This document shows positions 8,220 through 64,000 of a stretch of DNA of 64,000 nt, piece by piece (the stretch's first letter is position 1; each line of letters begins with the position of its first letter). Where the stretch lies: NCBI GenBank assembly GCA_964035545.1, contig OZ037771.1, forward strand, positions 13,701,133-13,765,132, given 5' to 3'. Source of the stretch: Bugula neritina (taxonomy: Eukaryota > Animalia > Bryozoa). The notes under the pieces are model-generated. The model was not told the origin of the DNA. It was given only the letters and a program-made list of their open reading frames with translations, and ran no database searches. A program made the translations under genes and the position numbers.

Positions 8220-10241
8220 CACTCAACTTATAGATATTCCGGTACATTCCAACATAGATTGCTCCACCCACATTCAACAAAGTCTGTGGTACAGCAGGAA
8301 GCAAGCTACTCTCTGTACACGGATCTTCTCCTTTAAAGCAGACTGGACCAACTATTCTCTTCTTCATATCCATTAGCTTGATTTTTTTATTTCCTGTGTC
8401 AGCAACTAGGTACAGATTGTCTGTCACTTCTTCAATATCATGAGGATAGTAAAATCTAGCAATGTCATACGAGCCAATCACATCACCACTACTTGTAGTT
8501 GAACGAGCCAATAAAGTGTTACTAAGTGTTCCATTGCTGAACCAGCTGACTTGTGATATGTAATGATAATGATTAGCTACTAGCAACGCGCATGTCTGCC
8601 AGCCCACAGAAATCCTGAAGGATGACTGAACCCGGTATTTATTACTGTATTCAGTTCTCCTGTCTTCATATTACCAGACCTTATAGCATTATTATGCTCA
8701 TCAGTTACTAATAGCTTTCCTGGGTTCCTAACATCTATCTGTACTCCATATGGGTAATTCAACTGTCCCACCCCTACTCCTCCTTCTTTGTAGCCTCTGG
8801 TACCACATGATCCTGCCATGACTTTGATATTATTATCTTCTCTTGTCAGTAGTTTAATACAGTTACTTTGGTCTACCAGAACGACATGAGTTGTATTGAG
8901 TTGTGTGAAACCTGGTACAAGAAACGACACAAGAGTTGAAGTTGTCTGCCCGTCCGTAGTTAGTAGACCAGAGCTAGTACCGAGGAGGAGGCTTCCATCA
9001 TTCTTATATTTATCAAGTTCCATGTGATAGGTGTTGTAAGAAGTTGTAAGGAACAGTTCTGCTTTCTTGAAGGATATGCTGCAATAAATAAGATAATAAA
9101 TGTTTATGAATATTTCAATCTATTAAATATCAATTTTATTTGAGCTGCGGCTATGATTGAATTAAGAAACTATGGGCTGTAGTAATTAGTAGTAGGCACA
9201 CAGTGGTATAATATACATAATAGCTGTAACATATAGTATACAGCTGTAACATAATAGTATACCACTTGTAAAAGTATTATAAAACATATTACATGGAGAT
9301 TATCAATTACATTACTGCATTTGATTCCTAATATTTCAATCTAATATAAACATCAGTTTTGTTTGCTGCTGCAATAAAAGTGAATTAAGTGAATTAGATA
9401 TGTGTTGATCATCAACTTTATTCTCATAATAACACACTCCTATGCATTGTAAACAAATTACTGGACTACCTCATTCATAAACATGCAAAGTTCTATTTCA
9501 TCAACTTATATAGCAATTGAAAGTAGCCAACAAAGTGTTGTTAACCAAAACAATGCATCTTCTTGACTTTGTACATTATATACTTGAGGTTCACAAAATA
9601 GTCTTAGCTGTATTTTCTAGTACTTTAAGTTCTATAAAAATGTAAGCATGTGTTTTGTGTAGTATTTATCATGATGAAACAGTATATTATTTTATAAAAA
9701 CTCTATTTTCTGTTTTTGATACTTGAACAGCGCTATAAATTATTAAACACAAAAAGCTCTAATTATGCATATAAAAACTATTTCACAATTTAATCAGTAA
9801 ATATTTTATTGAAAATTCAACGATATTTTTATATTTAATCAATTCTAAATTAATTGACACATTTAATAGCAGCTTTATAATGAATATATAATAATTAATG
9901 CTAATATAATTATATAGTGAGTAAATTAAGGCGTTGTAACCATAGCAACATTATTGATTACATATATCTTGCACATAAAACTATGTGTAAAAACAGTTCA
10001 TATGTATATATCAACATAACCAAGTAGTCTACACTTACCTTGTTTCATTATTCCTATCAGCAGTTGTCTGTCCACAGACTACCAGCAGAATCTAAGACAT
10101 ATATTATTATTATGATATTCACAATATATATATTATATATGCTTAATGCTTGAAATTTCAAAATATAAAAGAAGTAATGAATTTTGAGTGTTATAGAAAA
10201 GTATAAATTATACTTAGTGCAGCTATGTACCACCAGTACAT
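8220..10241 (-). pseudogene. Secreted NHL-repeat beta-propeller gene, copy 1 (pseudogene)
   Basis: Exon 1 10241-10221 (MYWWYIA) has its donor altered to GCACTAAGT. Exon 2 is 10091-10039. Exon 3 9078-8220 carries a 5-nt insertion (gcgca, ~8588-8592) that splits it into ORFs 8580..9023 and 8212..8607. No exons 4-6 found downstream. Confidence 0.85.
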
Positions 10242-12772
10242 CTTTTCTGTGTAACGTCCACCTGAAGTGAATGTTTTCCACAAATGAAGTCTATCTAGCA
10301 AAGTTACAAACTTTATATCAACTCACTAGCAGCATATGTTAGTTCCCATCAGAAAGATGTGTTGAACATAATAAGAGTTATCTTATTTTTATGATACATG
10401 CAAGTAATTTCTATGCTTTTATCAAGAGCCGTATCTGTTTAGAATAATATCTACTTAATAGAATTCTTGAGACTGTTAGAAAACAAACTTCAGTGTATAA
10501 CTACAGTATATAGCTTCATTATTAAGCGTGTTTATACTATTTTATTGATATTTGTCTTACTATTATTATCTACTATGTGATAATGTTTTGTAACATATTT
10601 GTAAATGTTAAACACTTCTACTTTGAACTATCTTCTCATATACACTTAGTGATCCATAAGTATTTTACACTCATATTACCAGCACTTGAAGTGACTACAT
10701 TTGTAAGGGAGACAATTATTCTAATATTATACCCCATTGTTGCTCTAATCACCATATTATTTTTATATTACATCATTCAAATATAACTTCAGTGTGCCAT
10801 TTTACTCACTTCTTCAAATACCAAACCCAGATCCCCAAGCCTCATTTCTTAACCCGAACACCCAAACTTCATACCCCCAACTTAACCTAACCAAACCCTT
10901 CAACTCTAAACTCCAAATTTCAAACTGTAGCACATTTATCTAGTTTTCCATGTGTACTATTATTATCCACACCAAATTCACTTTGCCAGTTTTACCTCTG
11001 CTAACTTTACCCGCATTGGATATGGTATTCCACATGTGCACTGAATGTAAAGATATATTAGTATATAATATGTTATTAAATATATTCCATGTTACGTATA
11101 ACAACTTCATATAGCACAAGTTGTTGAACACTATTTTCAGTGTTCAGTGATATGATATAAAACATAGTTTCACTATTGAGTGTGCTTTTGTAATATTTGA
11201 TATACTCTATTGTAGCAGTAGCTGGCAGCATGTTTACATGCACACTGTGTGTATGCGTGATTCCTAGTCCTTCGTCATAAAATATTAATAGCTCCTAAAC
11301 AAAACAATAACTTCCTACAACTGCCCAGCAAAAGCCACAATCATTGAATCAAGTGTATTGCAAAAGTCTAAGACAACAAATCTGCCAGAATATTTCTGTT
11401 CCCTCATTTGGACTTACTTGGGGCTGGTGGTGCAATTTGAGTGACCAATGGGATTTGGAACACATCATTTTTGTTTACTTGTTTTTTGTGTATTATTCTG
11501 CTGCTGTTGAAAAGCATTGGTTATCCTGATCAGTTGTTATTAGTAGAGCCAAAGAGCAAGTTATACTACTTAGAATTTTACATTAAACAAGATACATATT
11601 ACTAACTGTTGCAACCTAAGAGCACAAGCTGTATTATCAAGTTCTCAGATCAAGAAGAGCTAAAGGTTTGTCTGCTATTAATTTTTTTATCATTTATTGT
11701 CTTAATGCTGTAATATATAAATACATTTAGCTTATATTATATGAAATGGTTTATAGCCGACATTATTTTTAATGAAGTATTATGCAGTAATAATTTGCTT
11801 ACTTCAATAATTTTTATGTGTGTTATTTCCTTACAGTTCTTACTTTCTTGTACTGTATTTAGCCTTATATTGTGTGTATTTTATTTAAATTTCACGCTGT
11901 AGCTTTGTGAGCAAAAGTGTTATAAGTTGGAATAAAATACAAATAACTACACTCACAAGACATCAGTTGAATTCCTAAACCTACTCTGATAAGCTTGCGG
12001 TTGCTAGCAAACCTAACTAAACTGCTACAACTATACTATTTGATATATCTGTACAATGTGACAATGTTTCGTAACAGATTACTATCAAGTGTGTGTATAC
12101 TATTTGATGTATTTGATATACTATTTGATATATCTGCTCTGTGATAATGTTTTGTAACAGATTTGGAAATGTTAATAAACACTTTTACTTTAAACTATCT
12201 TCTTATATACACTTAGTGATTCATAAACTGTATATTACACTCAATACCAGTACTTAAAGTGACTACATTTGTAAGGGAGACAACTCTAATATATTACATC
12301 TTCCGGTTATGGCACTAGCTATATTATTTGTTCAACTTGCCATATTATATGGTGTGAGAAGTTTTATATAATGTTTGGTAAAAGCGACACAAGGAAAACT
12401 ATAGCTGCACCGCATGGTTAAAATGACATGCACAATACAAATATTAAGGGTAAATTTGCACCGGTAATAATTAATTACATAATTAAAAAATTAAATAAAA
12501 ATATCCTATTTTTAATAGTGTGATTGGGTGTTGAAGCTGTGAGTATTCAAAGAAAGGGTTTGTGGGTTTAGGGCTTGAGGGTTTGGTGAATTGAAAGCTA
12601 TAGGATTTGGGGTTTGGAGTAAGCAGTATATAGCGGTTTGGGGTTGTGGTAGAGGGTTGAATTGAAGGCTAGAAATAGTAGTTTGGGTTTTGGCAAAATA
12701 AACATCAGTGTTCTATTTAACTTACTTGTTTTATTTGTGCTATAATTGTACCTACGCCAACTATATATTATG

Positions 12773-63500: not shown

Positions 63501-64000
63501 TCCACCCACATTCAGCAAAGCATATGGTTTATCAGGAAGCAAGCTACTCTCTGTACACGGATCTTCTCCTTTAAAGCAGACTGGACCAACTATCCTCTTC
63601 TTCATATCCATTAGCTTGAGTTTTCTATTATTATAGTCAGCAACCAGGTACAGATTGTCTGTCACTTCTTCAATATCATTAGGATGGTAAAATCTAGCAT
63701 TGTCAAACGAGCCAATCACATCAGTAAAACTTGTAGTTAAACCAGCCAATAGAGTGTTACTAACAGTTCCATTGCTAGACCAGCTCACTTGTGATATGTA
63801 ATGATACCAATTAGCTACTAGCAACTGTCTGCCAGCCCACAGAAATCCTGAAGGATGACTGAACCCGGTATTTATTACTGTACTCAGTTCTCCTGTTTTC
63901 ATATTAACAGACCTTATAGCATTATTATGCTCGTCAGTTACTAATAGCTTTCCTGGGTTCCTAACATCTATCTGTACTTCATATGGGTAATTCAACTGTC
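57537..64000 (-). CDS. NHL-repeat beta-propeller protein, copy 5 (5' part beyond window)
   Basis: Partial exon 3 64000-63458, then exon 4 59867-59727, exon 5 58167-57969, exon 6 57648-57537. Exon 4-6 lengths (141/199/112) and phases match copies 2 and 4. Introns 3 and 4 are expanded by insertions. Confidence 0.85.
58946..59466. mobile_element. Probable MITE in intron 4 of copy 5
   Basis: 13-bp inverted termini TATAGTTGAGCCA / TGGCTCAACTATA, with internal (TA)n. It lies in a ~1.3-kb segment absent from intron 4 of copies 2 and 4. Confidence 0.5.
60500..60800. repeat. (TA)n microsatellite
   Basis: Direct reading. Confidence 0.98.
60855..60899 (-). ncRNA. Hammerhead ribozyme in the inverted Penelope arm (sense to host gene)
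   Basis: Exact reverse complement of 62471-62515. Confidence 0.8.
62471..62515 (+). ncRNA. Penelope-associated minimal hammerhead ribozyme
   Basis: GAC-CTGATGA-tCGTAG ctcgca CTACGt-GAAA-CAATATTG-TA-GTC: intact core with palindromic stem III. Confidence 0.8.
62630..63444. repeat. Compound (TA)n tracts in intron 3 of copy 5
   Basis: Direct reading. Confidence 0.98.

Follow-up and report, generated by a model that had tools for sequence, protein, structure and literature searches.

A tandem array of genes for secreted NHL propellers in Bugula neritina, members of a candidate diversified recognition family

The window analysed here, a stretch of 64,000 nucleotides from the genome of Bugula neritina, carries five paralogous genes on the minus strand, with ATG codons at positions 10241, 18685, 28047, 43420, and 65286 (copies 1 to 5, respectively); the last of these lies 1.3 kb outside the window. 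Copies 2 and 4 are intact. Each consists of six coding exons with GT-AG splice sites and agreeing phases, and the predicted proteins of 460 aa (copy 2) and 459 aa (copy 4) end with a single terminal stop. In copy 4, the first seven codons of the signal peptide are located on exon 1 (43400..43420), while exon 2 (43240..43292) encodes the remaining signal peptide, the T-E-A cleavage motif, and a NET sequon. Exon 3 (41472..42325; 854 nt) contains the entire six-bladed NHL propeller, including 23 top-face codons identified as positively selected. It is followed by tail exon A (40908..41048), which encodes a strand and a helix of a putative ferredoxin/SEA-like domain, tail exon B (40364..40562), and the final exon with the stop codon (39970..40081). 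The exons of copy 2 (14500..18685) occupy positions 18685-18665, 18557-18505, 17606-16750 (the propeller exon, 857 nt), 15652-15512, 15129-14931, and 14611-14500. The sequons NET22, NVS, and NQS as well as Cys pairs were present in the spliced models of these two copies. The first-pass annotation, which had been made from the sequence alone, was correct in describing five same-strand paralogues, two spliced products of about 460 aa with these sequons and Cys pairs, and a propeller encoded by a single exon of about 855 nt.

The same annotation regarded the array as a mixture of intact, truncated, and dead members. This holds for copy 1, which is dead, and copy 3, which is tail-less, but three copies instead of two are complete, since copy 5 (57537..64000 in the window, continuing past its end) is also intact. 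Its exons 1 and 2, at 65286 and 65120, are both outside the window and its propeller exon (63458-64314) partly so; the tail exons occupy positions 59867-59727, 58167-57969, and 57648-57537. An optional exon of 177 nt (60135..60311), which had been overlooked, encodes a two-Cys beta module of about 59 aa, so that the protein comprises 519 aa with the module and 460 aa without it. Copy 1 (7626..10241) is a pseudogene with a propeller exon at 9078-8220 and an equally overlooked counterpart of the module exon at 7626-7802. Its exon-1 donor is lost, and a frameshifting 5-nt insertion is present near position 8590 in the propeller exon. The tail exons of copy 1 are probably those at contig C7:13687813 and 13686248; they precede the window by 13-15 kb, with a large inserted element in between. 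In copy 3 (25813..28047), three exons (28047-28027, 27915-27863, and 27071-26221) precede a fused exon-4/exon-6 remnant from 25851, and the tail was lost by a deletion that joins the exon-4 acceptor to exon-6 DNA. This copy is not dead: a stop-free frame of 312 aa, which comprises the signal peptide and propeller, remains.

Additionally, the minus strand contains orphan copies of the family upstream region. One of these (31595..33205) is devoid of coding exons and stops about 105 bp short of the ATG position; the second (47089..48683) lies within the 28288-36634/43578-52133 duplication, and the third (54081..54776) is a shorter fragment. No NF-kB-type site was found across the whole window, which counts against the recognition role proposed below. 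Genes of this family are born, truncated, and lost via tandem duplication.

The encoded proteins display the following order of elements: a signal peptide, a one-exon six-bladed NHL propeller, zero to four two-Cys spacer modules, and a six-Cys tail, which is ferredoxin/SEA-like according to a weak model. The signal peptide was called from hydropathy and the -3/-1 rule; it has a short h-region, and in copy 4 a basic n-region is lacking. Neither a transmembrane nor a GPI tail was detected, with the best 19-residue hydropathy window reaching 0.9-1.6 only, in agreement with the earlier claim that a transmembrane segment is missing. Spacer modules are absent from copies 2 and 4, occur once in copies 1 and 5, and number up to about four in older family members. 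Four module copies gave no Pfam match, HYR included, at E-values up to 10. The module resembles HYR by eye and is about 20 aa shorter.

Searches with the spliced gene models were run one exon at a time. Pfam domain PF01436 was matched by 22 of 34 close members at E-values up to 0.01, and two window copies reached the cut-off. The fold model was made for a natural full-length paralogue, P0059, for which AlphaFold yielded a six-bladed propeller with 24 strands and a pLDDT of about 97; the NHL domains of SOQ1, NHLRC2, and TRIM71 were its nearest Foldseek and profile neighbours. Rows of the last blade were misaligned in the full-model alignment, and positions were remapped pairwise. Since short tail exons were misaligned in MAFFT, the tail model was built on the alignment of one exon. 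In this weak model (pLDDT 53; top Z no more than 6.4), the SEA domains of MUC16 (Z 6.2, 5.8, and 5.6) and TMPRSS6 (5.7) scored no better than ferredoxin folds of unrelated proteins, and SEA leads from the structure atlas had values of 0.76 and TM 0.52. The tail had no Pfam match, SEA included, at E-values up to 10, the G-S-V-V autocleavage motif of SEA was not seen in the tail alignments, and the tail sequence search returned P0059 itself as the sole relative.

The survey of the whole genome revealed 118 matches to the propeller exon and 76 matches to the tail exon, with clusters on contigs C7 and C2 and loci spread over at least six contigs; the clusters on C2 and elsewhere are recorded here by their coordinates. 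The number of genes in a B. neritina-type genome is estimated at about 75-95, a scale far beyond the five-gene array initially described. A spliced, intron-free contig of 1925 nt encodes a 520-aa paralogue with a hydrophobic N-terminus and the common tail, followed by a stop codon and a 3' UTR, and the B. neritina gene model KAF6040527.1 represents a further family member. For the five window copies, RNA runs gave a word share of just 4-12%. Metagenome pattern scans gave no matches. Older members pair 1:1 between samples at 85-96% identity, while in the young clade 27 sequences obtained from other material of B. neritina reach at most 87% identity to the compared copies. The background divergence of orthologous DNA between samples is about 13%. 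Since the divergence of the young clade matches this background, the other B. neritina samples are probably cryptic species. Within a large bryozoan family, the window array appears to belong to the clade that is youngest and turns over most rapidly.

Selection was examined using codon models M1a and M2a, which we implemented ourselves; sites were called by empirical Bayes from 13 sequences. The comparison of these models points to purifying selection on the propeller frame and strong diversifying selection on about 23 top-face residues. Namely, the 13 propeller exons gave a likelihood ratio (LRT) of 298 with an omega of 7.4 at 9.5% of sites; the LRT was 169 for seven copies of the window's genome and 66 for the four open window copies. 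The dN/dS values were 7-12 at about 9% of propeller codons. In the same five genes, the LRT was 91 for the propeller but 0.6 for the tail, whose exons were joined for the test. All 23 selected sites are on the top face: 19 in the b-c or d-a loops, which form the ligand-binding surface of NHL propellers (PMC4015489), and four at residue 2 of strand a. The 49 bottom-loop codons contain none (Fisher p 1.4e-4). Omega was 1.69 in top loops, 0.48 in bottom loops, and 0.42 in strands. Mean identity is 19% at the 23 sites versus 83% elsewhere, and these sites are rich in Tyr (16% versus 3%), Arg (12 versus 3%), His (5.5 versus 1.4%), Trp (4.7 versus 0.8%), and also Ser. When older members were compared as independent orthologue pairs, the 23 positions differed three times more often than the others (34/194 versus 146/2204; p 1e-6). 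Recombination and local mutation hot spots were excluded as sources of the signal by null simulations with heavy recombination (LRT up to 5.3) and by synonymous change, which was not elevated next to the selected sites. Venoms and the proteins of gamete or conspecific recognition are other secreted proteins known to be under positive selection.

The best sequence and fold matches were NHLRC2, SOQ1, and bacterial TEN_NHL-type proteins, which have long Gly-rich d-a loops in common with the family. The bryozoan proteins differ from NHLRC2 and SOQ1 in the absence of a thioredoxin-like or HAD domain, the position of the signal peptide directly before the propeller, and the hypervariable top face. 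NHLRC2 and SOQ1 are single conserved orthologues, in contrast to about 90 copies, 118 matches, and rapid turnover here, and identities are just 25-30%. The propeller, which is intronless and has bacterial proteins as next-best matches, may or may not have been acquired by horizontal transfer from bacteria. A quick tree placed a long branch between all 51 family sequences and six outgroup NHL proteins, among which animal NHLRC2 and teneurin were not represented. TRIM-NHL proteins (Brat, LIN-41/TRIM71) also possess a six-bladed NHL domain whose b-c/d-a top face binds the ligand (PMC4015489), but this face is conserved for RNA, whereas that of the secreted bryozoan family is diversified. The RING, B-box, and coiled coil of TRIM-NHL proteins are absent from the gene models and from the full-length P0059 and P0213.

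Extracellular or lumenal NHL propellers are also present in PAL, the PknD sensor, NHLRC3, and teneurins. Unlike these, the family lacks a membrane anchor, YD shell, and kinase, and catalytic residues are not conserved on its top face. The invariant metal or catalytic top-face residues of PAL and propeller hydrolases were not recovered on its hypervariable face, and the invariant columns of a wide alignment (Phe, Gln, Cys, Arg, Gly, and Leu) look structural. The transmembrane segment and EGF repeats of teneurins are missing as well, with the proteins stopping at 460-520 aa followed by a UTR; neither PAL nor teneurin was among the 52 PDB profile hits. The first-pass premise that well-known NHL proteins are cytosolic or membrane-bound was therefore incomplete, given the extracellular propellers of PAL of peptide amidation and Mycobacterium tuberculosis PknD (PMC4015489).

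The family combines several features of diversified secreted recognition families: multigene organization, birth-and-death turnover, secretion, a selected binding surface, and a conserved second domain. C1qDC and Sp185/333 are germline-diversified secreted recognition families of invertebrates. VCBPs and FREPs are likewise secreted, multigene, and subject to birth-and-death, with a variable head and a second domain (PMC3342036). All of these use other scaffolds in other phyla, whereas the bryozoan family pairs NHL with a SEA-like tail, has no Ig, fibrinogen, or chitin-binding domain, and gives no sign of somatic diversification. Tachylectin-2 propeller lectins are secreted and positively selected in a coral (PMC2880987), but consist of five blades that are nearly identical and each carry a sugar site, in contrast to six divergent NHL blades with one composite variable face; they gave no sequence or fold match to the family. 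Podospora HNWD NLRs (het-d, het-e) similarly carry hypervariable selected sites on the propeller interaction face (PMC12222747), but are cytosolic NLRs of the WD40 type, in which internal repeats evolve in concert and the variation is allelic, instead of secreted NHL paralogues.

We propose, with a probability of roughly 0.6, a function deduced from sequence: a secreted recognition family, diversified in the germline, that combines a variable head with a constant tail and whose targets are probably microbes or parasites. In mucus, cuticle, or coelomic fluid, every paralogue would display a distinct binding surface for a different foreign ligand, such as the surface of a microbe, parasite, or fouling organism, or an effector secreted by one of these. 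Evolution of the target would drive top-face selection, the spacer modules would determine reach, and the SEA-like tail would dimerise the protein or tether it to a common host partner. Binding may then result in agglutination, opsonisation, or neutralisation. The repertoire would be germline-encoded; no sign of somatic rearrangement was seen here. The initial view of a lineage-specific, secreted birth-and-death family outside any named family agrees with the family count, gene models, transcript, and fold and profile searches, and its diversified recognition role gains sequence support from positive selection limited to the propeller top face. Among the options then offered, pattern or target recognition fits best and allorecognition is less likely, while plain adhesion is disfavoured because it leaves face-specific selection unexplained. 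Rather doubtful is an antibody-like innate repertoire, in which about 90 secreted variable-face NHL heads would each have their own non-self target and a host receptor shared by all of them would recognise the constant SEA-like tail in the manner of an Fc.

Conspecific recognition, in which a separate receptor would read the propellers as self/non-self labels in colony fusion-rejection or as cues for larval settlement with kin, is unlikely because of the many dispersed loci (at least six contigs carry the roughly 90 paralogues) and the absence of a membrane anchor. The Alr-type allorecognition system of Hydractinia, by contrast, is transmembrane and encoded in a single complex. Bryozoans have been listed as one of the sessile groups with histocompatibility (PMC12018476), and fungal het-d/het-e allorecognition operates via selected propeller-face sites (PMC12222747). 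The young clade, unlike the older members, has no close counterpart between samples, but this divergence equals the background of probable cryptic species.

A role in gamete recognition, ovicell or brood secretion, or choice of vertically transmitted bacterial symbionts is less probable still. Proteins of these kinds are secreted, and positive selection on them is common; the RNA runs with the best word share (8-12%) were labelled symbiont metagenome. However, this share is low, these runs include whole host tissue, and 90-gene repertoires are rare for gamete proteins. Offensive or defensive effectors, which would bind and block targets or enzymes in competitors, predators, or prey without host signalling, are improbable: arms-race selection fits equally well, a signalling or anchoring part is absent, and the propeller-only copy 3 is kept open, but Pfam, PDB, and fold searches revealed no pore-forming, enzymatic, or toxin domain. 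A secreted PAL-, lactonase-, or strictosidine-synthase-like enzyme is highly improbable, as is a matrix protein with a structural or adhesive role evolving under relaxed selection, despite fold matches to six-bladed propeller enzymes and bacterial relatives annotated as lactonase YvrE, given that the PAL active site lies on the top surface (PMC4015489), where the family varies most, and that an omega of 7-12 is beyond the reach of relaxed selection.

The literature search retrieved no paper describing this family or such recognition molecules in Bryozoa. Bryozoan colonies are filter feeders that fuse, reject, and keep specific symbionts, and the family supplies named, testable recognition candidates for this phylum. 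Known roles of the NHL propeller are RNA binding, enzymatic activity, and adhesion; the pattern described here suggests that it can also become an extracellular scaffold for diversified binding. The 23 positions under selection may serve as a natural map of residues tolerating randomisation on a stable single-exon propeller, which aids the understanding of binding surfaces.

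The 216 Mb genome (about 31% GC) carries, as the first-pass annotation had claimed, an array of five same-strand paralogues, all located on the minus strand within the window (G000:C7:13701133-13765132; copies 1-5; start codons at 10241, 18685, 28047, 43420 and, beyond the window, 65286). They are 66-82% identical as proteins and share a common exon plan: exon 1 of 21 nt, exon 2 of 53 nt, and exon 3, which encodes the propeller, of 851-859 nt. Copies 2 and 4 possess three more tail exons of 141, 199, and 112 nt with canonical splice sites and splice into proteins of 460 and 459 aa, matching the two complete ~460-aa ORFs predicted earlier. 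The predicted mixture of intact, truncated, and dead members was also found, but the intact ones additionally include copy 5, which became complete after adding its first exons, located 1.1-1.3 kb past the window end; here, an additional 177-nt exon stays in frame, resulting in 519 aa. Copy 3 lost its tail by a deletion that fused the exon-4 acceptor with exon-6 DNA, and retains an open frame of 312 aa comprising signal peptide and propeller. Copy 1 is dead: the exon-1 donor is lost and a 5-nt insertion shifts the frame. The N-terminus has a hydrophobic core of 11 residues followed by G-Q-T-E-A, which fits the heuristic -3/-1 rule. Nothing near a membrane helix was detected outside the N-terminus, in line with the claimed lack of a transmembrane segment.

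A Logan contig from SRR4125604 (1925 nt, intron-free) encodes a 520-aa paralogue with, in order, a hydrophobic N-terminus, the propeller, a single spacer module, the tail known from the window copies, a stop, and a 3' UTR. Its resemblance to the window resumes exactly at the acceptor of tail exon B, the second of the tail exons. This transcript, which represents a paralogue and not any window copy, confirms the family exon plan and the absence of a membrane anchor.

The AlphaFold model of P0059, a natural full-length paralogue, displays a six-bladed propeller with 1+3 closure that spans residues 36-322, most of them modelled at a pLDDT of about 97. The closest solved structures are the NHL domains of SOQ1, NHLRC2, and TRIM71, with a structural identity of 12-17%, and a profile search agrees. 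The family encodes an NHL protein, but membership in the NHLRC2/SOQ1, TRIM-NHL, teneurin, and PAL groups failed in each case; the best canonical NHL-repeat matches of this genome are at other loci. Head and tail are separated by 0-4 copies of a ~59-aa two-Cys spacer module (37 instances in the family loci examined), for which Pfam gave no HYR match. The tail, with six mostly conserved Cys, is predicted with low model confidence to adopt a ferredoxin-like fold. SEA domains recur among its fold matches (Z 5.6-6.2), but these scores are level with those of unrelated folds and neither a Pfam SEA match nor the SEA autocleavage motif was found; the 'SEA-like' tail is therefore a lead only.

Variation among 34 close propellers is concentrated in short periodic patches, and all 29 positions whose entropy reaches 2 bits or more map to blade junctions or directly follow strand b. 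Pairwise dN/dS ranges from 0.43 to 1.28 when whole propeller exons are compared, and from 0.36 to 0.59 in the tails. Comparison of site models M1a and M2a (GY94/F3x4) for 13 propeller exons gave an LRT of 298, with 9.5% of codons at omega 7.4 and 23 sites above a posterior of 0.9. The signal persists in the copies of this genome (LRT 169, omega 11) and in the window copies alone (LRT 66). For the same five genes, the LRT was 91 for propellers versus 0.6 for tails. With loops delimited by the strands of the propeller model, 19 of the 23 sites fall in b-c or d-a loops and the other four occupy position 2 of strand a, versus none in the 49 bottom-loop codons (p 1.4e-4); omega is 1.69 in top loops, 0.48 in bottom loops, and 0.42 in strands. 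The b-c and d-a loops by definition form the NHL top surface, where Brat binds RNA and PAL has its active site (PMC4015489). Neutral evolution was simulated 24 times, including 16 runs in which the tree was reshuffled at intervals of 60 or 20 codons; the LRT never exceeded 5.3. Synonymous differences were 0.136 next to selected sites versus 0.118 elsewhere. In an independent test of nine orthologue pairs of older members, the frequency of differences at the 23 positions was threefold that at the remaining positions (p 1e-6). Tyr, Ser, Arg, His, and Trp are overrepresented at these sites, as they are on antibody-type binding surfaces. Intron-2 distances (copy 2 versus copy 4, 0.095; copy 2 versus copy 3, 0.116) are about half of the synonymous distances of the adjoining propeller exon (0.215 and 0.255), a hint at mosaic genes formed by unequal crossing-over.

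The architecture, the head fold, diversifying selection on one face, the constancy of the tail, and gene turnover (birth and death) through tandem duplication are features established for this family. As to its role, we assign a probability of roughly 0.6 to recognition of microbes or parasites. The protein would be secreted into mucus, cuticle, or coelomic fluid; each paralogue would bind a different ligand, the target being foreign and fast-evolving, and the tail may dimerise or dock on a shared host partner. Recognition of conspecifics is unlikely, and participation in reproduction or symbiont handling quite unlikely; direct effector action appears improbable. An enzyme or matrix protein is very improbable. 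By analogy, the family recognising microbes or parasites would work like VCBPs and FREPs (PMC3342036); it shares face-specific selection with the fungal het-d/het-e propellers (PMC12222747) and has positive selection as reported for coral tachylectin-2 (PMC2880987), but scaffold and phylum differ in all these cases. No description of this bryozoan propeller family was found in the literature searched, which lacked most subscription papers.

The propeller exon has 118 matches in the genome, about 94 strong and about 22 weak, and tail exon B has 76. The weak matches, mostly on contigs C8 and C4, may represent a related family. About 15-18 more propeller frames, each on a single exon, are clustered at G000:C8:7.73-7.97 Mb and C4:8.37-8.39 Mb and are only 23-32% identical to the window's family. 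At G000:C7:10716828-10717437, tail exons occur with no propeller exon close by, and a member at another family locus (L014:2999) has its last exon about 350 bp past the propeller exon, with tail exons A and B not detected between; both are additional truncated forms of the family.

Close relatives came from JGI assemblies labelled AY690838, the accession of the B. neritina mitochondrial genome (PMC2678162). The young clade, including the window copies, has about 12 copies in this genome; 27 different young-clade sequences from other samples are each at most 87% identical to the copies compared. Older members, by contrast, pair one-to-one between samples at 85-96% identity. The B. neritina hypothetical protein KAF6040527.1 clusters with the family and its counterpart here is 88% identical; DNA identity at one orthologous locus is about 87%. 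Judging from these matches, the genome would belong to B. neritina or to a cryptic lineage sister to it. The family predates the genus, since relatives that consist of one exon and share 34-44% identity, located on contigs with a GC content of 38-40%, fall outside the Bugula clade.

The tandem birth-and-death process is recorded by an 8-kb duplication (28288-36634 and 43578-52133, 93-94% identical) and by three orphan upstream segments (31595-33205, 47089-48683, and 54081-54776). The duplication also contains, on the minus strand, two copies (33700-35600 and 49200-51100) of a gypsy-like gag/protease/integrase frame that has decayed but still matches Pfam rve and zf-CCHC. STAT-like TTCnnnGAA sites occur in the upstream region that copies 2-4 have conserved: copy 2 has a single site (19878), whereas copies 3 and 4 each have a pair (29259-29283 and 44538-44562) at a distance of 1.1-1.2 kb upstream. 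Further sites lie in orphan duplicates of this region (32715 and 48220). Nine were observed versus 3.2 expected, but in copies that are duplicates of each other and thus not independent, so they are a lead only. No NF-kB-type site was found in the window.

The window begins with the terminal part (1 to about 7452) of a large dispersed element, rich in AT and poor in ORFs, which sits in an intron of dead copy 1 (boundary at about 7453) and recurs in 10 other places on contigs C1 and C3-C8; with 98-99% identity across >7.2 kb, it looks recently active. Fragments flanked by (AT)n tracts at 37800-39400 and 60500-62900, the second in the copy 5 intron with inverted pieces, had no Pfam match; we take them to resemble a Penelope-type retroelement C-terminal/GIY-YIG region. 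A 12-bp minisatellite, ACCTCCACCCAA, has 19 copies at 30824-31050 and 37 at 46103-46545. It is embedded in CAAACCC-rich repeats, also present at 12.9-13.6, 22.6-24.6, and 55-57 kb, which are probably a dispersed non-autonomous element.
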